From contig NEEC01000130.1 of assembly GCA_002189035.1 (NCBI GenBank), forward strand, positions 1-32,202: DNA of 32,202 nt, read 5' to 3'. This document shows, piece by piece, positions 8,717 to 32,202 of this stretch. Made by a program: the position numbers and the translations under genes. This DNA comes from Utricularia gibba (Eukaryota > Plantae > Magnoliophyta). Numbering within the stretch: the first letter of the stretch is position 1; each line of letters opens with the position of its first letter. The notes below the pieces were generated by a model. The model was not told the origin of the DNA and searched no databases. It worked only from the letters and a program-made list of their open reading frames with translations.

Positions 8717-9561
8717 TCATTTTCTTTTGGTTTTGGCGTTTCTTCTGTTTGATCTTGGAGTTGCAGCAGTGCCAAGGACTTTGTACATGTCTGCTGTGAT
8801 TTCCTTCAGCCACAGCCCAGGGAACAGTTCCTGAAACAGAATCCCAGGATGGAATACGTCGGTGTAAGCGTATTGATCGGAGAAGAAGGGCGATTTGGGA
8901 GTTCGGGGGGTGGGGGGGCTTACATTCAAGTGTCTCTGGACGATCTGGGGTCTTTTCTTAGGCCGGCGCGGCGGCCGGCGACCGAGGATACGGAGGAAGT
9001 CGTCTTCGATTTCTCTTTTCGATAGCGGGATTGAGAATCTCACCCGTTTCGTATCCTCCGCCGCGCCGATGCAATTGTTCGGATGGGCGGCGATTGGATT
9101 GTTGCTGACGCCGGCTTAGAGGAGGACTGCATCTGGGGGATTTCGGAGGGAGGAACCGACGAATTTATCACGAATCTCTTGCCACCGACAAGTCTACCGG
9201 CAACCACCGATGCAGCACGCCTCTTCCTCAGGTTCCGCGACGGAGGCAGAAAAGATGGATTTAGACCTTCCTTCCAAATCGCGTCCCTCATTTTCTCCGC
9301 TGCAATCTGCAGATCGTGAATCACTTTCATTCTCATCGCCTCAATCCCGCTCTGGTCCTTATCGCCTATTTCAATCGCCGCGCTTGGGCCGAATTCCGGC
9401 GATCCAACCAGGACGCTGTCCGAATCCAACTTCCAGGGTTGTCCCGACATATGGTCGTAAAATCCTTGACTCCTCCTCCGGTGACGATGACTCCCCCAGC
9501 CCACGTCACACGGCGGCGTAAAATTGCGCAACTCTTTACATCTTTGCTCTTCCCTACCCAT
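8717..9561 (-). CDS. DUF1639 family protein. Exons 9561-8924 (one frameshift near 9063) and 8830-8717
   Basis: N-terminus RNFTPPCDVGWG; middle GIEAMRMKVIHDLQIAAEKMRDAI and RNLRKRRAA; C-terminal DUF1639 core RFSIPLSKREIEDDFLRILGRRPPRRPKKRPQIVQRHLN|ELFPGLWLKEITADMYKV with a 93-nt GT-AG intron. Adding one G at TCG GCG [G]CG GCG GAG joins the two ORFs. Confidence 0.85.
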
Positions 9562-10876
9562 CTACCCCCTGCAATTGAAAAATCCCCAATCGGATTCTCC
9601 AGATTCCGGCGAATATGATAAAAAACGAAGACGGCGGAGCAGTTCTACTTCCACTGTGCGTCGTCGTCCCCTTGAAACGCCGGGTCTGTTGCTCTTTACT
9701 GGCGAGATGAACCGCGGGTTGTTCGTAGAAACAACCGAATGCACCAAATACATCAAAATGCTCTTTCTTCTACAAGTATACGAAAGAGTATTCACTTTTT
9801 ATTTTTTTTAAAAACATCGTATTTTGTATAAAAATTTTTTATTTTTGAGTAAAAAAAAGAAAATTTTAAATGTTTTTAGTAACAATAAAATTGAATCATA
9901 AAAATAATGATGATTTCAGGATTTTTAAATCACAATTTTTTATTATTTTATTAACTTAAATTATATCCACAATTTTAATAAAAAAATACAATTTTTGATA
10001 TAGTATATAAAATTTTAAAAAATTGAAAAAGACGAGTATTTTTTTAATTACTTGTAATAGTGAATATTTTTGTAATGTGTGTTTAATATAAAATTTAGTT
10101 CCATAAAGTCAAATTACGTAGTTAATCATATGTTATTGATTTTCAAAAAATAACTGTTAATTTCCATAATTTAAAAATCATATATAATTGATTTTAAAAT
10201 TGAACAAAATCAGTCCATATTGTTTTCCACTACAAAAAAAATTAATTTCAATTATAAAATTCTAATTTTTTTTTATCAATTTCATATCTTCCCATCATAC
10301 ACTCGAATGCCAGATGCCTATTTAGAAAATTAACCACTGTTACATTTTATCTCACACATTTTAATAAAAAAATGCATATAGAATGATCACTTTTTTCACA
10401 CAATATTTCATAAATTTTTAACCATGCCTTCACATACATACATTTCATCGAGCCTGCAGGAAATGACGTGACAGACGATGGGCGGCCACCGATCGACCGT
10501 ACACGGTGTCAAAGCACAAATTTTACTAAATAGTAAAACAATGAGATGTTAATTATATTTGATTTTTAAATAATGAAGATCAATTAATTTTATATGAAAA
10601 TAGTAAAAACTAAAAATAGTCAAAATGAAAAAAACATTAAAATCTAATTTTAATCAATACATCAAATTTTGTGAATTAAGTAAGTTAATTGAGATTAAAT
10701 ATGTCATTTAAACTAAATATTAAAAACTAATATTTTATGCATAATTCAGAATAATATATATATTTTTTATTTATGGATGCAATATAAGCATCTCTTCTAA
10801 CTGCATACACTCATTGAAAACGACGCATACAAACTCCTTCAGTAGTGGTAGCCTGTCGATCTTCCATGGATTCATC

Positions 10877-12164
10877 TCAAAGATCATTGTTGTGAGTACG
10901 AGGACGGCGGGTGCCATCCGATCCACCGGGCGCCGGATGGTGCAATGCCGGAGTTTGTCCGGCGTGGCCGGAAGCGGGGTTCTGAGGCAAACCCAACAGA
11001 CAGGATCATCATATGCGATTCTTGTAAAAATTGAGGGATGGATCCACGACTCACGAGTAGCGAGAATGGCACCTCGAGTGTTCCTTGGGTTGCTGCAAAG
11101 GAAGGGTTTAGCCAAGCCTGATGAGGAATCTCATTGAATCCAAGTCTTGTTTTTTGAATCCAAAGCCACATAACTTGTGTCTCAGCTTGGAGACATCTGA
11201 TGCGCTTGATCGCTTGGTCCAGAATCGCAGCTTGATCCCACTGAAAACAATGGTTCTTGGAGCTTGTTGGAGCTCCGGAAGTGGTGATAATCATGGTGAG
11301 GTTGATGATTATACCTTGGAGTTGCTTGTGCTCGGTAAAAGCTCCCGGAGGCTTCTCAGTTTCTCCCTCACTGCATCCCTTCTCTTCTGTTGAAAAACAG
11401 CTATGGTCATTTATGATGATTATGGTGTAAAAATTGTAGAAGTTACTGGTATTGCTTCACCCTGTCGCGTAACAACTGAAGCCTTTTCTTCCGCCGGAGC
11501 TTCTTCTGCTGATCCTGGATAACAGGGACCCGTAGATGTAAAGGAATTTACTGGGTTTCGGTAAGAGATTACAGGCTCACCAGATCTGCGCCCTGAGACC
11601 AAATCTGAGTTTTCCGTGGCGGTAAAGGAACGCTACGAGTTTGATCAGCATTCAAGGGATCTTCAGGGGATTTACCGGCGACCGCCCCCTTATCTGCCAT
11701 GCTCCACGTTTCCGGCAACGGCAGCAAAACTGTGGGATTTTGATCAGTGTTCAGGGGAATGTCAGGGGGGTGATTGAAGATCCCCGCCATGCCCACCGAA
11801 ATCTGAGTTTCCGGCAACGGCAAAGAAAAGGTGCGAACTTGATCAGTCTGCAGGGGAATCTCAGAGGTTTTATCGCCGACCACCGCTGCATCCACCGGAG
11901 TCCAAGTTTCCGTTGAGGAAACTCCACGAGCTTCATTCCCCGTCAGGGAGACTCAGAGGGTTCAACAACGAACGCCGCTGTATCCACAGGAATCCGAGTT
12001 TCCGGCGAGAGAAGGAGACTGCAGGTGCTGTTCATAGTCTCGCAAAATGGCAGATATCTCGTCGGAGTCGAAAACTTGAAGGTAATCCTCCATTGTCTCT
12101 GCCTTTTTTCGGTGACTGGTGATATGAAACAGGACACAAATCGATCATGTGAAGCTTCTGCCAT
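10877..12164 (-). CDS. Divergent bHLH transcription factor of PIF/SPT (group VII)-like architecture. Exons 12164(start uncertain)-11581, 11514-11461, 11386-11315, 11240-11175, 11117-11073, 10981-10877
   Basis: Phase-0 GT-AG exons read DQQKKLRRKKRLQLLRDR | KRRDAVREKLRSLRELLPSTSNSK | WDQAAILDQAIKRIRCLQAETQ. This parallels the PIF pattern ..HNLSER | [22 protein letters not shown] | [22 protein letters not shown], including the 66-nt helix-2 exon. There is one 1-nt frameshift at 11946-11948. The start codon and last two exons are less certain. Confidence 0.75.
11606..12005 (-). repeat. Coding tandem repeat, 99-bp (33-aa) period, 4 units plus a partial fifth
   Basis: Plus-strand anchor GTTTCC at about 11609, 11708, 11807, 11906 and 11998; TGATCAG at 11642, 11741 and 11840 (exact 99-nt spacing). 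Units: ETRIPVDTAAFVVEPSESP[L]TGNEARGVSST / ETWTPVDAAVVGDKTSEIPLQTDQVRTFSLPLP / ETQISVGMAGIFNHPPDIPLNTDQNPTVLLPLP / ETWSMADKGAVAGKSPEDPLNADQTRSVPLPPR. Confidence 0.9.
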
Positions 12165-13650
12165 GGAAATAGCGAAGCATGTCAGAGCTCCAGTTTTCGG
12201 CTGCCGCCATTTTATTTCTTCTTTAATAGGAATGCGTCCGTCGGATGCCTAAAATGGAATTTTCTTTAAGTCCAATTTTAGCGGATGATAAGCCGTACAC
12301 CTAATTCAAACTTTTTTTTAATTAAAAATATATTTCATTAAAGTAGTTTATGTAATTAATAATATATTTAAATTATTTAAAAGTATTTTTTAGTAAATTG
12401 ATTTTACAAATAGGTATTTAAAATGATATTGTATTTAATAGATATAATTAAATAGATGAAAAAAAATCTAACCTAGTTCACATAATTAAAGTAACTCATA
12501 TAACATGATAGTTTTAAAAAATATTTTAAAAATAAATATTAATGTGTTTCACAAATTGAATATATATTATAAAATAAATTTAATAATATAATAACCATTT
12601 TGTAATATATCCCACATTCTACGAGGGATCTCCTTTCTCGCATAGTGTGGCGGTGGAGTGGTCCGGCCACCGGCCACCGTCCGTCGGAGAAGCATCTCTG
12701 AAACTGCACTTTGTTCGTGGCTGCCAACGTGACTCCCAATAGTGTTCCGATTTTACTGAAATTATTTGGATGATATTATATTTATTATATTACTTTAATA
12801 TTTGTAGGTTCCCAAATTGAAAATCGAAACCAGCATGTACTATAGAACCTAGTTTTGAGAAGGGTGGATTCCGATACTAGCAATCTTTTGTGTTAAATAT
12901 ATATTATCCATATTTATTTCATAAAAATATTTCCAATTAATAATGTTGTCATGGAAATCCCAGTAAATTACAAAAGTGGTTATGTATAGAAATAAAAATA
13001 TTTAAATATCTGAGAGATAAAATGATAATGATCATTTTTGTAAATGATATACTGGTCAAAGTGTACTCCAAAAGCTATTGTAGCAGTGGGGTAATTTTCA
13101 AATGGGGTTAGAAAATTCATCATCCTGTACCATTGGAATGAAATAGAAAACATAATTAATTTTAACAAAATTAAAAATTCTAATAAAATAAAAATTGATG
13201 TGTGTTTGAAATTGTTTTATAAAATTATTATTATAAAATTAATTAATATTTGAAATGAAAAAAATAATAATAAGTGATCTTTATAAATAATTTACATATT
13301 TACTAATATTTATTAATAAACATACTTTATAAATTTACTTAAACAAAACATATTATATAATATTAATATTTATCAAACTCTTAACTAATATTATCAAATT
13401 AGTATTTATTTTAAAATGATATTAATTATAATTCTGTATTAATAAATAGATATAATAGTAAATTCAATTGTTAAAATCGAATCTTAAAAAACAATTATCT
13501 ATGAAAAACTACACACATCCATATTTTTCAGAAAATTGAATTGATTTTTAAAAATGAATTCTGATAGAAGAGAATCAGGTATATATTTATAAGACATTAA
13601 TTCTACGACAATACAATTCAATTTTGTATTATAATTTGATGGGGGGTGGA

Positions 13651-13760
13651 GGCGTGTCCTGAGGGGCGGACACGGAACCGAGGATAAGGATAGGGTGCCT
13701 GGGAAACAGAAGGAACGTATCCCGGTAACGTCGCTGCCCCTTCAAGCCGCGTCCTCAAAA
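13651..13760. promoter_or_regulatory. GC-rich non-coding island A (putative cis-regulatory module)
   Basis: Abrupt GC-rich block in very AT-rich DNA. Contains the inverted repeat CGTGTCC/GGACACG (13653-13674), an I-box-like GGATAAGGAT and GGAACGTATCC, and shares a module with island B. Confidence 0.45.
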
Positions 13761-14118
13761 TGGGATTTTTTAAGCAGTTCTTCTAGAGCACACCAATGCA
13801 TATCAATAGCTATAAATATATTATCCACATTAGCCAAGACATTTCCTACTTCTAAAAAATAATTTTATTACTAAACACATGTTGTAAAATAAACATAAAT
13901 TTAAAAACGTTTCTAATTTTGAATAAATTATAGAGCTTCAGTTTATATTTTATTAAAAATACTTTTTGAATATTATTTGTCAAAAAAATAGAATCCAACA
14001 AATGCTTTAGAAACATTCCTTATTTTTAATAAATTACACATACAATTTTTTATTATTAGAACCATTTCTTATAAAATTCTTTTTGATGGGTAAATGTTGA
14101 GTTTAATATTTAAGGAGT

Positions 14119-15671: not shown

Positions 15672-17039
15672 AAGCAATGTTTTAAACTTTGCTAAAATTT
15701 TTCAAAAATTTGGATTTCAGATTTTTTTAAACAATTTTCAAACTTTAGATTTATTCTGTGTTAATAATTTTTTTGAAGTGACTATATTTAATTTTTTAAA
15801 ATTCTAAAATTTAATCGTAAAATCAAAATTCATATTTTATGATCAAATTTAGAAATTATTAAATTTTTTAAATCTACGTTCGTGATTAAATAAAATAGTC
15901 ATTAGAAAAATTTTATTATTTATTTATGGTTTTATTTAAAAATACAGTTATATCATAATATATTAAATTTCAATATATTTTTTATTTTATTGAATTTTAT
16001 AATATAATGTTTTATTATTGAATAAAATAGTTTTACAATTTCAAAACTAATTATATGTATAAATATCAAAATTAATTCTATTTTATATAATATAAATACC
16101 TTCAATTATAGATCAATTGCTTTCTTCAAATTTTCCTCATTTTTCTTGAGATTTTTTCCACATTTCTCTTTTTAGATCAAATCTGAAATTCAAAATTTTT
16201 CCAAAGATTATTTTGAGGTAGAGAAGGATTGTTTTGTCGAATTACCGAAGAGTTGATTTACCAAATGAGCCCTTCAGATTTGGAGCCCGTACGTAAAATT
16301 TTTCAGTGGCACAAATGTCATTTACCTACACACGAGACAGTCGGTAATTGAAGTTAATGGCAGCGGCGGGAGTCGTTCGGTGAGTGTACTTCCCCACGAT
16401 ACAAACCCAACGCCTCCTGCAGACGTGGCGGCTTCCCATCGGTGGTCGCCTCCAGCTCTGAGGATCACGTAGCGGCCCACCTCACAAAAGTGCATCCACA
16501 TAGCCTGCTTTTTGGTGAAGACAACCGACTGAAGTAACGTTCATATCGCAGTCGCCTTCTTGTTTTCTCTCCTTTTTCTACTTTTTTTTTCTAAAGAATT
16601 CCTGTTTTTCGACGAAAAGCACAAGCTCGGTCCCTTATATCATTATCGTTATCGGTATAGGATTCACTCGTGATCTGCTCTGCCATCTTTTGAGGTCTTT
16701 CCTGTGACCACTTTTTCCGCTGCTTTCGTTGGTGGGTGCTCAGCTTCCCCTGAGTCCGAGGTTAGTTTCGTTTTCCGATCCCGGATATTCGTGTCTGATG
16801 TGTGTTTGCGGCAAAATTAAGGAAATCTGCAGACCCAGCACGACGAATTCCGAGCTGTTTATCTATGTCTGTTCTTTGCCGCTGAAATCTCACCTGCATC
16901 GAATGAATGAAATAACCTTTTTTTTTTCTTTTGAAAGAATGGGATTGTGAACTGATTGTTTTGGAAGAAGGTAATGGGGAGCTTGCAGATGTTGGAGAAG
17001 CGAAAGGTTTTACTGCTGTGATTGAGAAGAAGGGAGCTG

Positions 17040-18445
17040 ATGGATAAGCAGTGTGATTTTTGTGTGGCATCGAGGCCTGTTGTATACTGCAAGGCGGATG
17101 CTGCGTATCTGTGCTTGTTGTGCGACGCCAAGGTTCATTCTGCCAACGCCTTGTCCTCTCGCCATCCTCGTACGCTGCTGTGCGACCTCTGCCGATGCCA
17201 CCCTGCACGTCTCCGATGCCTCGATCACGACGTTTTCATGTGCCGGAGTTGCGATTCCGGCCACAGCACCTCATGCCAGCAACAGAGGAGATCGGTGAAC
17301 TCCTACGCCGGATGCCCTTCTGCTACGGATTTAGCTGCACTGTGGAGACACAGTTCAACTCTCTCTGAAGTAACATCCTCTGGCAAAGAACCATCTTCCA
17401 GTTCTTCATCAGCAACTCAAGCCAAGGTGCATTCGTCTTACTTTTTTCTTCAGAGGAAGTTACATGAAGCTTGATGATCATGATTCTCACAGGGTGTGGA
17501 AGCTGATACACTGATGCAAAGTAGCTATGTACTGCATCAGATAATGGACCTGGATCGGCTGGAGCTCTCCGACGGCGCTGTGAAGGAACTGGCTGTGAAG
17601 AACGATGCGCAGGTCGACTACTGTGATGGCGAACTTCTTGAGTTAGACACTTCATTCTGGGAATGCAAAAGCCCTGCTGACAGCAATGAGGTTGTCCAGA
17701 CGACACGAATCTAGAATCCCATGTAAATAGAAAGAAAGGAGCAATCTTGGTCTGATCCACGATGCCTGTGCAGATATGGATGCAGGATCTCGGATTCTGT
17801 GACGATCCACGATACTTGGACAATGTTACTATACCTGATGTCGACCCGAAATTCCAGAACCTGGAAGACATCTTCGGGGATGGAGGAGGGAGCATGGAGA
17901 ATGCCTTTTTCTGCTCTGGCCAGGATTCATCTTCTGGCAAAGGAGAGCAGCTTTGTGGGAGCATAATCCAGGTAATCTCTCTGTTTCAGCAAATGAGTGT
18001 TCTTATTGCGAAAGAGGGATTCCATGCTTTGTGATTGCAGCTCCAGAAGCAAGACAGCACAGAAAGCAGAGAAACAAGCATATTTGATCAGCCAAATGGA
18101 TCTTCCTACTCAACTTCATCCTCCTCCATCTCCAAAGTCATCACAGAGAGCAGCGGTTATGAGTACAAAGACGACGGGTATTCTCCTAGTAGAGAGAAAG
18201 TGATAATGAGATACAAGGAGAAGAAAACAGCAAGGTATGTCTGCTGAGTGTTTAAATTCATCCTGGTTTTCCTGCAAAGAGTCGACCCTGAATTGGGCAT
18301 TGGATGTATCTGGTATACAGGCAGGAAAAGCAAGCTGAGTATGCAGCAGCAAGGGACAAATCTGCAGAGAAAAAGGGGTAAAATTCAGGTAATGATACAA
18401 CAAGAAGGCGATAAAAGCTCAGCAAACATCACCAGAAGCATTTGA
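17040..18445 (+). CDS. Double B-box zinc-finger protein with C-terminal CCT-like domain, BBX27/At1g68190-like (CONSTANS-like family). Exons 17040-17426, 17493-17690, 17774-17971, 18041-18234, 18321-18445 (frame anomaly in last exon)
   Basis: MDKQCDFCVASRPVVYCKADAAYLCLLCDAKVHSANALSSRHPRTLLCDLCRCHPARLRCLDHDVFMCRSCD (two B-boxes) plus YAGCPSATDLAALW; IWMQDLGFCD..IPDVD..FQNLEDIFG; REKVIMRYKEKKTAR (CCT start). GT-AG junctions are in phase. Confidence 0.9.
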
Positions 18446-19901: not shown

Positions 19902-20670
19902 ATGGCTGCAGAATCGGCACAAGTGAAGCTTTTGGGCACAAAGCAAAGCCCATTTGCACTGAGGGCGCGCATATCCCTCAACCTCAAGTCCGTGGAGTAC
20001 GAGTTCCTGGAGGAACATTTTCCTGGTAAGAGCGAACTCCTCCTCAAATCCAATCCTGTTATGAAGAAAGTTCCCGTTCTCATCCACGGCGACGTCCCCA
20101 TCTCTGAATCTCTCGTCATTCTTCACTACATTGATGAGACCTGGTCCCAGGGACCCCCGATCCTCCCTTCTCATCCCGACGAGCGCGCTGTTGCCCGGTT
20201 CTGGGCTCACTGCATCGACGAAAAGGTACCATTTTGGAATAGCCCTTATGCCATTTTTTCTAATGTAGAGGAGCTCAGATACGTTTCCTCTGTTGTAGTG
20301 GTTTCCATGTGTTAGTGGCATTCTGCTGACAGAAGGAGAAGAGTTGAAGCAGAAGGTGGAGGGAGCCACAGAAGGAGTCGCTTTGCTGGAAAATGCTTTT
20401 GTGGGTATAAGCAAAGGGAAGAAGTTCTTTGGGGGAGAAACCATCGGATATCTGGACATTGCGTTCGGATGCTTTCTCCAATGGTTGGATGTTATCGGTG
20501 TGCTCTCTGGTCTGAAGCTCATCGATGAAATCAGGACTCCAAATTTGTTCCAATGGGCTCAAAATTTCACCTCCGACGCGGCGGTGAAGGATCTTCTGCC
20601 CCAGACCGATGAGCTCGTCGAGTTCGCTCAGTTCCGCATCAGCAGCTTCAAAGCTCCGGCCAAGAACTGA
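19902..20670 (+). CDS. GSTU: Tau-class glutathione S-transferase, 231 aa. Exons 19902-20225 and 20299-20670
   Basis: VKLLGTKQSPFALRARISLNLKSVEYE...LLKSNPVMKKVPVLIHGDVPISESLVILHYIDETW...RAVARFWAHCIDEK|WFPCVSGI...KKFFGGETIGYLDIAFG. Catalytic Ser is present, with the single phase-0 intron (73 nt) typical of tau GSTs. Frame is intact. Confidence 0.96.
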
Positions 20671-23067: not shown

Positions 23068-23553
23068 ATGGGGAACCACATCTCGTGCAGATTAGGAGCC
23101 GCCAAGTCCACCAGGGTGATTCTCCCCGGCGGCGAAGTGCGCCAGTTCAAGGAACCGGTGACGGCGGCGGATCTGATGCTCGAATCGCCTAATTTCTTCC
23201 TCGTGAACTCACGATCGTTGAGGATAGGGAGGCGGTTGTCGCCGATTGCCGCGGATGAGGATCTCGAGTTCGGAAACCTCTATATTATGATTCCCATGAG
23301 GAGAGTTCATTCCGTAGCGACGGCGGCGGATGTCGCTGTTTTTATGATGGCTGGCAATTCCGCGTCCAGGAGGATCCAAGACCCCGCCGGCGTTTCAGGG
23401 GGCGCCAGGATATCGCCCGACACCACGGCGGTCGGAGGAGAGACAGGCAGTGGCGCCACGGAATTGAGTTACCCTGGGGAGTTGACGGAGTTCAAGTACA
23501 GGCTGTCGGTTTCCCGGTCGAAGCGGCCGGCGCTGGATACCATAACGGAATAG
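23068..23553 (+). CDS. DUF4228/PADRE-domain protein, 161 aa, single exon
   Basis: MGNHISC N-terminus (myristoylation/palmitoylation-like), TRVILPGGEVRQFKEPVTAADLMLESPNFFLVNSRSLRIGRRLSPIAADEDLEFGNLYIMIPM and C-terminal RSKRPALDTITE. Intact ORF. Confidence 0.9.
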   Translation: MGNHISCRLGAAKSTRVILPGGEVRQFKEPVTAADLMLESPNFFLVNSRSLRIGRRLSPIAADEDLEFGNLYIMIPMRRVHSVATAADVAVFMMAGNSASRRIQDPAGVSGGARISPDTTAVGGETGSGATELSYPGELTEFKYRLSVSRSKRPALDTITE

Positions 23554-24739: not shown

Positions 24740-26758
24740 ATGGGAGCTGAAAGAAAATGTTTGTTCATCCTGTTTTCGGGTGCATTCGTTACCTTATTGA
24801 TCTTCTTGTCGCTTATTTCGGGCTTCAGTTACCCTTACTTCTCCGCATTCCCACCGGAAAAGTCATTTGTTCCAACGATTCACAAAGGGCCGGGCCTTCC
24901 TCCGGCATTCGCATACTACATTTTCGGCGGTCCTGGCGATGTGGATAGATTGTTCCGGCTGCTGCTCGCGTATACCATCCAGGAATAGATATTTGCTTCA
25001 TATTTCAGCTGATGGCAGCGATGACGAGAGGATTAGACTTGGGGCGTTGGTGAAAACAGTGCCCGCTCTTCGAGCATTTGGTAATGTGGATTTGATTGGG
25101 AAGCCTGATCCAAATACTCCACTGGGTTCCACGAATATTGCAGCTATCTTAAGAGCTGCTGCGATTTTGTTAAAGTTAGATTTTGGCTGGGATTGGTTTG
25201 TCCCTCTCAGTGCTTTGGATTATCCCTTGATTACCCAGGATGGTATGCTTTGTCTCTGTTGTGGATAAGAACCTTGCTTTCCTTTTGTTTTTGTTCATTC
25301 TAATATGGTAAATTGAATCTTTTTTGGACATTTTAATGCTGAATTGGATTTCTCTGCTGGATGAAATACTTAGCCTTCTGGTAACAACACAAATTGGTTG
25401 TTACTCCTGTAAACGAGCTCCATTACTTGATGTAGTCACCTTTTTACTAATTTGGAGTGTAACTTTTGGACATGATTGACTTATTGTAGGTCTATTATGG
25501 ATCCTGTTGGCTTAGTCTTACTGTTGTGAATTCTCGAGTTACCTTAGCAGTGATATGAAACTTCACCTGTCTGTGTTATGTTTACTGCAAATTTACAGAA
25601 CTTTTTCCCTTGCTAATGCGTTTGCACAATTTCCTGATGTATCTTCTCTTCTATAGAGCTTGGAAATGGTTAAAATATATCTTTTATTTGCAAGGGATTG
25701 CATTGTGCATAATCTACTCTTTGAGTTGCTTTTCAAATACACACTCTGTCAATCAAGTTTGCCAAAAGTAAAGCACGCTGCTAGAAGCTATCAGATATGC
25801 TTAAGTTCACGGATCTATCTGCAAATGAATGTTATCTGCTTGTTTTTTCACCTCCCCTGTGCAGCCATTGATCTGTTTACTTTGTGTTTGTTGTTTCAGA
25901 CTTGTCCCATGCGTTCTCCTCTGTTAGAAGAGACCTCAACTTCATCCAGCACACTAGTGATCTGGGATGGAAAGAGTAGGCAAAATCCTCTTCCCATATG
26001 TGGATTTCAACACCATTGAAAATGTTTTCCTAAAGTTTTCATGATCATCTCTGCAGGAATGACAGGATTCGGCCCATTGTAGTGATCCCTCTGTCTACCT
26101 TGCAAGGAAGTCACAAATCTTTCGTGCAACCGAAAAGCGGCCATTGCCTGATGCTTTCAAAGTCTACACAGGTACCATACCAAGTCCCTGTAATCCATCT
26201 CTCTCGATCCAAATGAAATGATCATATGTTGTTTCCTGCTAGGTTCGCCATGGTTTATCCTTAGTCGATCGTTCCTGGAGTTCTGTATTCTTGGCTGGGA
26301 TAACCTTCCACGCACCCTTCTCATGTATGCTAACAATGTCATCTTGCCCCAAGAAGTCTACTTCCATTCCGTCATCTGCAACTCCCCAGAGTTCAAGAAC
26401 ACTACTGTGAATCGGATTTGAGGTACTTCATCTGGGACGATCCTCCCAAGATGGAGCCTCATTTTCTCAGCAGCTCGAATTACGCCGGCATGGTTCGAAG
26501 CAGAGCGCTTTTGCTCGACAGTTCAAGGCGTATGATCCAGTTCTAGACATGATAGACAAGCGAATCCTCATGCGAGGCCGCAACCGCGTAACGCCTGGTG
26601 CTTGGTGCACTGGCAGTGGAAGCTGGTTCATGGATCCCTGCTCCAAGTGGAGGAGCAACATCAACGTTGTGAAGCCTGGATCTCGAGCCATGGAACTCCG
26701 GGAGTCCTTAGAGAAGCTTCTGGAGGAGCGGCAGACGCAGCACCATATCTGCACTTGA
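24740..26758 (+). CDS. Core-2/I-branching beta-1,6-GlcNAc-transferase family (GT14, GlcAT14-like glucuronosyltransferase). Exons 24740-25242, 25900-25975, 26057-26171, 26243-26758, with at least five 1-nt deletions in this sequence
   Basis: [14 protein letters not shown] + TM segment; [22 protein letters not shown][V]YHPRNRYLLH; [18 protein letters not shown]|[26 protein letters not shown]; [29 protein letters not shown]; [18 protein letters not shown]; PGAWC. The frame is restored by +G (24970), +C (24980), +G (26084), +T (26412) and +G (26507). Confidence 0.9.
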
Positions 26759-27954: not shown

Positions 27955-30649
27955 ATGGGCGATGGATATTCTTCGTCGAGGAGGGGCGGCGGAGCTGATG
28001 CTCCTTTGGCCGTAATTCGCGACATTCTTCGGATCTCCGGCGCCTGTAGTTTTCCGGGTGTCTTCAGGAAGGAGTGTGTGGAGTTGGTCCGGAGAATCTC
28101 GCTTTTGACTCATTTTCTTGAGGAAATTTGGGATTCCGAGAAGAATCGAGGGATTGCGAGATGGGTGGTTCCTCTTCGAACCGCTCTTGCTTTGCCGATT
28201 TGACTCTCGTGCTCCACGACGCCAGAAGGCTGCTTCTTGCCGCTGCCAACAACTTCGATTTTGCAGAGGACGCTTCTGTGAGTAGTCTCTTTCAGATTTC
28301 GCTCCTGCATTTGCTTCTCGGGTCAACCCTTTATCATGTTAAACTCCTAACTTCCCAGAAATGTTGTTAAGTTGCCTATTTCTGTGGCTTAAGCCTTGAG
28401 AGAGCGCTGATCTAAGCCTCTTCCTTCATGCATTCCGGTCCAGTTGGAACTTTCATGATGCTTTAGAAGCAGGGTTCTTGCTGAAATCGACAGATACCTA
28501 GCAAGAATCTGGCATCGGCATCGTTTTCCCTCTGCTTTTTAGGGAGTTTTAACCTTGGGAGGATGAAGTGAAACATTTCACGTGGGGTTGGTTTATGTCG
28601 GAAACTTTTCCCTCTGCATCTGGCTGTTGCTCTCGAACTTCCTTTTCGAGATTAGGTAGTCACTGAGGGGGACGAATCAGGCCAAGTTGGATAAGATGAT
28701 GCTTACTGTTTGAATCATTTGAGACCATTAGTGTGCTTGCTTAACCGAATAAGCGCGCACCCATGTTGCTCCAAACTGGCATGTTCCTACAAGCCTCAGC
28801 ATACTCCTCTGTCTGCTTATTTCTTGTCTTGACTTTGGGTGTGCATTTTAACACCATCCATTGAAGCTTACTGTTGTTTCTTGTTCAAGGTCATGTGCAC
28901 AAGAGAATCGCCATCCGATTTCGGGGGTGACGATGGAGTGGAGAAAGCACTGCTGAACTTTCCATATCAGTCTTTTGAAATATCAGAAGATGTGCAAGAC
29001 CAGGTTAGTAATAGCTCTTCTTGAACTTTCACCAGGCCAATGGAACTTTTCTGTAACTGGATCTAAGCTGTTGTGTATCCTTGTCGTCTCAGATTAAACT
29101 TATCCGGTCGCAGTTGAGACGAGCAGTCGGAAAATACAGCAGTTCAGATTCGAGCTTAGTACCACCGCCTTCAGATATTGAAGCTGATCTATCTCTACTT
29201 AGCAGCAGGGTAGCTAAAGTTCGAATTGAGGTTACAAAGAATGTCAATATCAAGTTCAGCCAGAGGCAGATGCTCTTGTGGAAAGCAAGGATTCTGAGGC
29301 CAGTGGAACGGATGAAGGTGCAGATGATAAGGGAAGCTTAAGTGAGACTAATGCTCATGAGAATTCCAAGAAAATGATGGCCGAAAAGGCAACTAGAAAG
29401 TGAAGAGGAGAGCAAGGCTCTAGGCTGCTCCCATCATTCACTTGTGATTCCTGTTGATTTCCTCTGCCCTATTTCACTTGAGCTCATGAAGGATCCTGTG
29501 ATCGTTGCGACTGGCCAGGTTCGAATCGAAAGTTAATCTTCTTCAGGGTTATTTCAGATTCTGCTTCATCTGACTCAACTGTAACATATTTCAGACATAT
29601 GAGCGATCTTGCATTCAGAGATGGATAGACTGTGGCAACAAGACATGCCCGAAAACTCGGCAGAAGCTATGGCACCTCAGTTTTACTCCAATCATCTGCT
29701 AAGGCGTTTGATATCCCAATGGTGTGTCAAGAACAATGTGCATCTCCCCACTGCTCTCATTGATGGAAAGATAAGACAGAGTGATGGCTCATTTCGGAAT
29801 ATCACTGGTAACATAGCAACTATCCGGGATCTTGTTCGTACCCTCTCTAGATCGACGGAGGATCTCCGGGCGGCAGTGGCTGAGATAAGATCACTCTCCA
29901 GGAGAAGCACAGACAACCGGATATTGCTAGCAGAAGCCGGAGCTATCCCGCTTCTAGTTAACCTGTTGCCATCTCAGGACGCTGGAATTCAGGATAATGC
30001 CATAACATGCATCCTGAATCTTTCTATATATGAGAGCAACAAGGAACTCATAGTGCTTGCAGATGCCATTCCATTGATCGTTAGAGTTCTCAGTACCGGA
30101 AGCATGGAAGCAAGAGAGAATGCAGCTGCCACCCTCTTCTGTTTATCCCTTGTAGATGAGAACAAGATCACAATCGGCGCGTCCGGAGCTATTCCAGCGC
30201 TGGCCTGCTTGAGAGTGGAACCCCAGGGGAAGAAAGATGCTGCAACCGCATTATTCAGCCTGTGTGCATACTCCCGGAACAAGGGGCGAGCCATCAAGGC
30301 TGGCATTGTACCTCCGCTACTGAACATGCTTACAGACGCACAAATAGCTTGGTGGATGAATCCCTGACCATGATAGCAGTCCTTGTAGCTACCGTGAAGC
30401 GAAATCAGCGATAGTGAAAGCCAACATGATACCTGTCTTGACTGGACTTGTGAGTACAGGCTCACCTCGCAACCAGGAGAATGCATCCGCCATTCTGCTT
30501 TCTCTGTGCAAGAAGGATAAGGAAAGCCTCGCCTCTGCCCGCCAACTCGGTGTAGTCGCCCCTCTCTTCGAGCTCACCAAAAACGGCACGGAAAGAGCAG
30601 GAGGAAAGCACTGCAGTTGCTGGAGATCCTGGCCAACACACCTCAGTGA
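27955..30649 (+). CDS. Plant U-box/ARM E3 ubiquitin ligase with UND domain, PUB10/PUB11-like. Exons about 27955-28277, 28890-29003, 29093-29518, 29595-30649, with multiple frameshifts
   Basis: UND: [22 protein letters not shown]...[21 protein letters not shown]|[12 protein letters not shown]-box: [24 protein letters not shown]|[24 protein letters not shown] repeats: [28 protein letters not shown]...[21 protein letters not shown]...[31 protein letters not shown]...[10 protein letters not shown]...[14 protein letters not shown]. Confidence 0.9.
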
Positions 30650-31539: not shown

Positions 31540-32202
31540 ATGGGAAACAGCATCGGAAATAGAAGAATGGCGGTTGTGGTGAGAACCAACGGGGACACTT
31601 TCAGATTGCCATGTCCGATACAGGCGGGAAAAGTGCTTGCAAATTATCCGGACACGTTTTGTTGGAGTCAGAGGAGGCGCGGCGCCGTGGAATCGGAGCT
31701 ACCTGATGGATCCGGATGACGATCTTGAGCCGAAGCGGATCTACTTTCTGATTCCGAAATCGGAGTTTCCAGAGGAGAGTAGGATTTTGACGAAATCGAG
31801 ATCGGAAGTTCGTCTGAGTGCCAGGGAGAGGCTGGAGAGCATCAAGATGCGGAGGTCGGCGCCGGCGATGCGCATCGCGATGGCTCCGACAGACGTTTCT
31901 GGAGTTCGGGTGACTATCCGAGTGAAGAAATCGGAGTTAGAAAGGATGCTGCGCGAGGACGGATACGGCAAGGAGCGGCGGCGGCCGCCCCGCTCAAGAA
32001 GCCAAGAACTCCGATCGTCGATCGCCTCAGGTTTCGTTTGCTCCAACTTCAATTCACGTAAAACTTCAAAACAAGGGTTTCGCTATCGGCTTTTTCATTC
32101 AAAAAGCAGAGAACTTGAATGTCTCCGTTGGTTCGTTCATGTTGCAGAGGCACAGTGGACTTTGTACCATCAACGAAAGTGACATCAAAATGCATGCTAC
32201 CG
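31540..32202 (+). CDS. Second DUF4228/PADRE protein, At1g66480-like subclade. Frameshifted; probable intron 32031-32147; 3' end likely beyond the window
   Basis: MGNSIGNRRMAVVVRTNGDTFRLPCPIQAGKVLANYPD[H]VLLESEEARRRGIGAT[L]MDPDDDLEPKRIYFLIPK...LSARERLESIKMRRS...GVRVTIRVKKSELERML parallels the family pattern MGNSLGGKKTAKVMKIDGETFKLKTP...HVLLESE..LEPKRLYFL..SAKDRLESL. It needs +C near 31653 and 31703. Confidence 0.8.

Follow-up and report, generated by a model that had tools for sequence, protein, structure and literature searches.

Exon 1 of a divergent bHLH gene in the bladderwort Utricularia gibba carries a 99-nt tandem array, and the question that it raises is whether the encoded 33-residue units amount to a new functional domain or to repeat DNA that has expanded inside a coding exon. 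An earlier note on this DNA had described the array as an unrecognised repeat domain at the N-terminus of a PIF-like bHLH protein. We followed it up in the window, that is, the whole stretch of 32,202 nt that was analysed. The array has the look of ordinary repeat expansion in one lineage rather than of a new functional domain.

The array itself is real, and occupies ~11581-12003 of the minus strand. Seed-and-extend alignment found a 64-nt core in four copies spaced by 99, 99 and 92 nt. Compared with itself, 11560-12030 gives identity peaks of 0.465 at lag 99 and 0.432 at lag 198, whereas 1000 shuffles never exceeded 0.357 at any lag. The array divides into a 92-nt unit A, full units B, C and D in register with one another, and a partial unit E (Table 1); GGAAAC marks the units at 12003, 11911, 11812 and 11713, and a variant, GGAAAAC, marks one at 11615. 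Gapless alignment of B, C and D gives 71, 66 and 58% nucleotide identity, with 15/33, 14/33 and 11/33 amino acids shared; units B-E hold exact register over 330 nt with zero indels, despite nucleotide divergence of 29-42%. With copies less than 70% alike, the array escaped TRF (minimum score 30). The protein consensus has ET at the start of the unit, PLx(T/A)DQ at its middle and LPLP at its end, so that both the 99-bp period and the rough consensus (E-T..., P-L-x-T/A-D-Q, L-P-L-P) of the earlier note match the unit alignment. Its count of four units plus a partial fifth, mostly in one frame, holds for the array and for the frame and register of B-E, but not for the 5'-most unit, which is short, off register and interrupted by stops.

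Table 1. Coordinates of the bHLH gene, its repeat units and its neighbours in the window
Feature	Coordinates	Strand	Remarks
N-terminal ORF	12004..12093	minus	ATG at 12093 (acaATGG); reads MEDYLQVFDSDEIS..., runs on to TGA 11964-11962, 43 aa
Unit A	11912..12003	minus	92 nt, not 99; first ~50 nt one base out of register
Unit B	11812..11910	minus	33 codons (ETWTPVDAAVVGDKTSEIPLQTDQVRTFSLPLP)
Unit C	11713..11811	minus	33 codons; holds first in-frame ATG past the stops (11790, ggcATGG)
Unit D	11614..11712	minus	33 codons
Partial unit E	11581..11613	minus	KTQIWSQGADL; end of exon 1, then donor CTG/GTGAGC
Intron 1	11515..11580	minus	66 nt, GT-AG, phase 0
Exon 2	11461..11514	minus	Lys/Arg-rich start of basic region (DQQKKLRRKKRLQLLRDR)
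Exon 3	11315..11386	minus	End of basic region, helix 1, loop (KRRDAVREKLRSLRELLPSTSNSK); Pfam HLH 18.9 bits, under the cut-off
Exon 4	11175..11240	minus	Helix 2 (WDQAAILDQAIKRIRCLQAETQ); bHLH helix-2 pattern by eye
Exon 5	10884..11117	minus	C-terminal 77 residues and stop
173-aa ATG-initiated ORF	9040-9561	minus	Just downstream of the bHLH gene; no Pfam match, absent from protein collection
B-box zinc finger gene	17022-17471	plus	Pfam
GST N-domain gene	19902-20312	plus	Pfam
Two PADRE/DUF4228 genes	23068-23550, 24867-25265	plus	Pfam
Core-2/I-branching glycosyltransferase gene	29609-30364	plus	Pfam
PUB-type ARM-repeat gene	31637-32179	plus	Pfam

What kind of gene contains the array? The frame of units B-E joins, in phase 0 and through a GTGAGC donor, four intact bHLH exons without stops. 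The introns measure 57-74 nt, and each is GT-AG and in phase 0; every exon length is a multiple of three, and the in-phase splicing that had been proposed is correct. With the exons searched singly, exon 3 alone scored 18.9 bits (E=1.3e-3) against the Pfam HLH model (PF00010), whose cut-off is 20.7 bits; a further alignment of exon 3, with Max bHLH chains (E about 0.08-0.1), covers their basic region and helix 1, and exon 4 alone (helix 2) has no Pfam match. We accept the gene as a divergent bHLH because of the exon 3 score, the Max alignment, the helix-2 pattern of exon 4 and the placement of the introns. Within the family we would put it with PIF/HFR1, by eye and from the intron positions. 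The label "PIF-like" in the earlier note has the intron positions and the by-eye pattern behind it; exon 3 alone falls under the Pfam HLH cut-off, and the APB core is absent.

Two further features of the introns may be recorded here. The 57-nt intron at 11118-11174 (minus strand, GT-AG) is stop-free and in frame, and its retention would insert 19 residues (VMWLWIQKTRLGFNEIPHQ) past the bHLH. Within intron 2 an ATG opens an ORF (11309-11410, minus strand) that runs in frame into the helix-1 exon (MTIAVFQQ/KRRD...), so that a transcript starting in this intron could yield a small HLH-only product lacking the basic region.

The surroundings are gene-rich, at about one gene per 4 kb, and this density, like the short introns (57-74 nt), agrees with a very compact genome. 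In the spacer upstream of the bHLH gene, where GC is otherwise 20-25%, there are two isolated GC-rich islands of ~120 nt (12620-12740 and 13640-13770). Rfam has no match for them; upstream exons, conserved non-coding elements and remnants of transposable elements are all possible identities. Rfam found no match anywhere in 9500-14000, and a bacterial promoter/terminator scan over 11900-12700 is irrelevant to a plant gene.

PIF-subfamily N-termini normally carry phytochrome-binding motifs. The APB motif (ELxxxxGQ core) at the N-terminus of PIFs binds phytochrome B; a regular expression for the core (EL....GQ) found it in none of the three minus-strand frames of 12210-11560, which bears out the earlier statement that there is no convincing APB motif. 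The VP[ED] COP1-binding motif is likewise absent in every minus-strand frame of exon 1; in HFR1 this motif is V-P-E/D-hydrophobic-G (Lau et al. 2019, PMC6745501). Literature searches on repeats in HFR1/bHLH proteins and on bladderwort bHLH genes turned up nothing relevant. The basic region of HFR1 lacks the G-box-binding His/Glu/Arg pattern. At the exon 2/3 junction here (LLRDR/KRRDAVREK), Leu and Asp appear by eye to occupy the His and Glu positions, a departure from His-Glu-Arg.

The 5' end of exon 1 is where the gene model fails. ATG 12093 is the best-context start, and the N-terminal ORF that it opens has the highest codon-usage score among its six frames. The 3' half of this ORF has a weak likeness to the end of a repeat unit, and may be a "unit 0". 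The MEDY peptide (in MEDYLQVF, which may resemble the HFR1 VP region) and the DNA directly upstream of unit A align weakly to a repeat unit, from which we tentatively suggest the gene's own N-terminus as the source of the array. Set against B-D, unit A lacks 1 nt near 11953 and 6 nt at its end, and its first ~50 nt are one base off the frame common to ATG 12093 and units B-E. TGA stops at 11964-11962 and 11955-11953 sit in that common frame. A third TGA (11945-11943) interrupts the frame in which unit A matches the repeat consensus, which is also that of ATG 12164, the start implied by the earlier reading. There are nine ATGs between 12210 and 11790, of which only ATG 11790, in unit C, reaches the bHLH exons; the two TGA stops part every upstream ATG from units B-E. 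With its N-terminus broken in unit A, the gene as assembled therefore cannot make a full N-terminus. The locus as assembled may give a shortened protein from 11790 behind uORFs, may be a decaying duplicate, or may contain two assembly indel errors within 50 nt; an upstream exon may also splice past unit A.

An intron that skips the unit-A stops was considered and is unlikely. Thirty-one frame-preserving GT..AG pairs are available, the best donors match 4/8 consensus positions, and the AT content of the candidates is 0.42-0.47 vs 0.55-0.68 in the real introns of the gene. The leader at 12093-12210 (minus strand) has its own ATGs at 12210, 12180, 12164 and 12148, which open ORFs of 11-73 codons upstream of 12093, and translation of the main ORF would need leaky scanning or reinitiation past these four. 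For annotation the lesson is that this gene model lacks an intact N-terminus and ought not to be translated straight across it.

Such damage raises the possibility of a pseudogene: the entire locus would be a duplicate from whole-genome duplication that is undergoing fractionation, and array and bHLH alike would go untranslated. The premature stops past the only good N-terminal ATG and the four more ATGs in the leader agree with this, as do an atypical bHLH (no H-E-R pattern and, by eye, Arg for the usual helix-2 Tyr) and a C-terminal region without detectable relatives: word search with its 118 aa (exon 4, read-through intron 4 and exon 5) found none among proteins of 65-206 aa. Exons 2-5, however, are intact and stop-free, with phase 0 and canonical GT-AG introns, and units B-E have neither indels nor stops. 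We think a pseudogene unlikely.

Whether the array was ever coding sequence can be approached from its frame. That of units B-E is the only stop-free one among six across 11572-11952 (127 codons), and its codon-usage log-odds are 0.098 per codon, where the recognisable genes in the window span 0.07-0.22 and the other frames of the array score -0.07 to -0.34. Differences between units are spread evenly over the codon positions (38/39/28; chi-square p=0.35), with no third-position excess. Between-unit dN/dS, a check proposed in the earlier note, gives no signal of constraint: the values in frame are 0.35-2.3, no lower than the 0.45-0.84 of the two shifted frames. About 10% of neutral simulations that start from a stop-free ancestral unit keep three units open, and therefore a coding origin is not proven by the open frame. 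The recurring motifs carry identical codons (GAT CAA, CCG GAA AC), which reflects shared DNA descent as much as protein selection. The evidence on coding is mixed, and the earlier claim of retention as coding sequence is not supported: the open frame, the lack of indels in B-E and the modest codon score agree with it, but the units show no constraint between them and no ATG reaches the array stop-free.

The repeat was rightly called unrecognised. The best Pfam match to the repeat region was DUF7407 (E=0.15; 12.9 bits vs a cut-off of 28.2). Word search with the 127-aa repeat ORF over proteins of 70-222 aa found no relative, and HMMER with the same ORF against 1.84 billion representatives gave 0 matches at E<=1e-3. 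ESM Atlas returned chance-level neighbours only (0.85 or less, low recognition), and exact look-up of four ORFs of the window in the protein collection found all of them absent. A dispersed repeat or transposable element was rejected as the source; within the window, the unit motif is confined to the array. On the plus strand a frame across the array is also open, for 91 codons, and this antisense ORF has no Pfam match.

These blanks have to be set against the reach of the searches. Even for a well-conserved PADRE gene of the window, the best relatives (in Sesamum, Buddleja, Paulownia and Rehmannia) are no more than 56-61% identical. Close relatives of the host are absent from the databases, and therefore blank searches do not prove lineage specificity. 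A disordered repeat, even if shared, is not detectable at such distance, and the blanks mean "no recognisable family" rather than "invented here".

As to fold, AlphaFold2 (single sequence, and so weak evidence for disorder) predicted no secondary structure, with a mean pLDDT of 55 and a pTM of 0.12. The 124-residue repeat region contains 15 Pro, 23 Ser+Thr and 15 acidic vs 8 basic residues. Both model and composition would fit an intrinsically disordered stretch.

On balance we consider it probable, though by no means assured, that the array is a coding minisatellite, formed long ago when a 99-nt segment of exon 1 (33 codons) was duplicated in tandem within the gene. The gene would be a divergent bHLH of PIF/HFR1 type, in a Lamiales plant that evolves fast and has a compact genome, and the segment apparently came from the gene's own N-terminal region. 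The encoded stretch would be disordered, Pro/Ser/Thr-rich and mildly acidic. After duplication the units would have drifted almost neutrally at the amino-acid level, with units B-E retaining the reading frame (no stops or indels) and the short motifs PLxTDQ and LPLPET; length and frame may have been tolerated or weakly selected. The 5'-most unit would then have taken frame-breaking indels in this copy, although the two frame breaks could instead be assembly indel errors, which would count against this part of the account. What the gene now makes may be a shorter protein from ATG 11790, with ~1.7 units and the bHLH, behind several upstream ORFs; alternatively, this may be a decaying duplicate.

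The same array could instead be an N-terminal domain with a function under selection, its short motifs forming a multivalent scaffold or phospho-degron in place of a photoreceptor- or COP1-binding region; the breaks in unit A would then be assembly errors or be bypassed. Frame and register kept for 330 nt without an indel at 29-42% divergence would be expected of such a domain, PLxTDQ and LPLPE/KT recur in every unit, and the gene is without an APB motif. Yet the units show no protein-level constraint between them, and the identical codons in their motifs are what DNA descent, not protein selection, would leave. Stops cut all upstream ATGs off from the array, no relatives occur among the 1.84 billion representatives, and VP[ED] is missing along with APB. 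We think this rather improbable. The degron or scaffold function proposed in the earlier note is pure speculation, given the lack of a VP[ED] motif and the featureless AlphaFold2 model. A more specific version holds that the 33-residue units arose in the bladderwort lineage and have been kept in two duplicate bHLH genes, where a multivalent PLxTDQ/LPLPET motif array would have taken over from a phytochrome-/COP1-binding N-terminus and would tune how stable an HFR1-like non-DNA-binding bHLH is or how it binds partners, the unit-A breaks being assembly errors or specific to this copy; we give this little credence. If the array were translated and selected, a light-signalling-type bHLH would have had its regulatory N-terminus rebuilt by repeat expansion in a drastically reduced plant genome. 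On present evidence, this is ordinary repeat expansion and decay in a disordered region.

Very unlikely, finally, is a non-coding minisatellite in a 5' leader, with the real protein a small HLH-only product, for example from ATG 11410 in frame with exon 3: the ORF at 11309-11410 does begin with ATG and read directly into the helix-1 exon, between-unit substitutions do look neutral and a plus-strand frame is open for 91 codons across the array, but the strong donor at 11580, the acceptor at 11515 and the in-phase basic-region exon 2 would then be purposeless, and the array frame, free of indels, scores best in codon usage.

The preferred reading, a coding minisatellite within a PIF/HFR1-type gene, can be placed beside two known systems. 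The first is HFR1 and the PIFs (subfamily VII). The helix 1-loop-helix 2 region fits KRRDxxxEKLRxLxELLP...K-x-D-Q-A-x-x-L-D-x-A-I, phase-0 introns fall in the basic region, in the loop and past helix 2, and the long N-terminus appears unstructured, all as in these proteins; as in HFR1, the basic region is without the G-box-binding His/Glu/Arg. Unlike them, this gene has no APB core and no VP[ED] motif, has Arg in place of the conserved helix-2 Tyr, and has an N-terminus built of 33-residue repeats. The second comparison is with intragenic coding minisatellites in the disordered regions of transcription factors. The units here are unusually long for these (33 aa) and old (29-42% nucleotide divergence), and the 5' unit is frame-broken, whereas the period that is a multiple of three, the kept frame, the low-complexity Pro/Ser/Thr-rich composition, the absence of a predicted fold and the fast, near-neutral divergence are those of such minisatellites.
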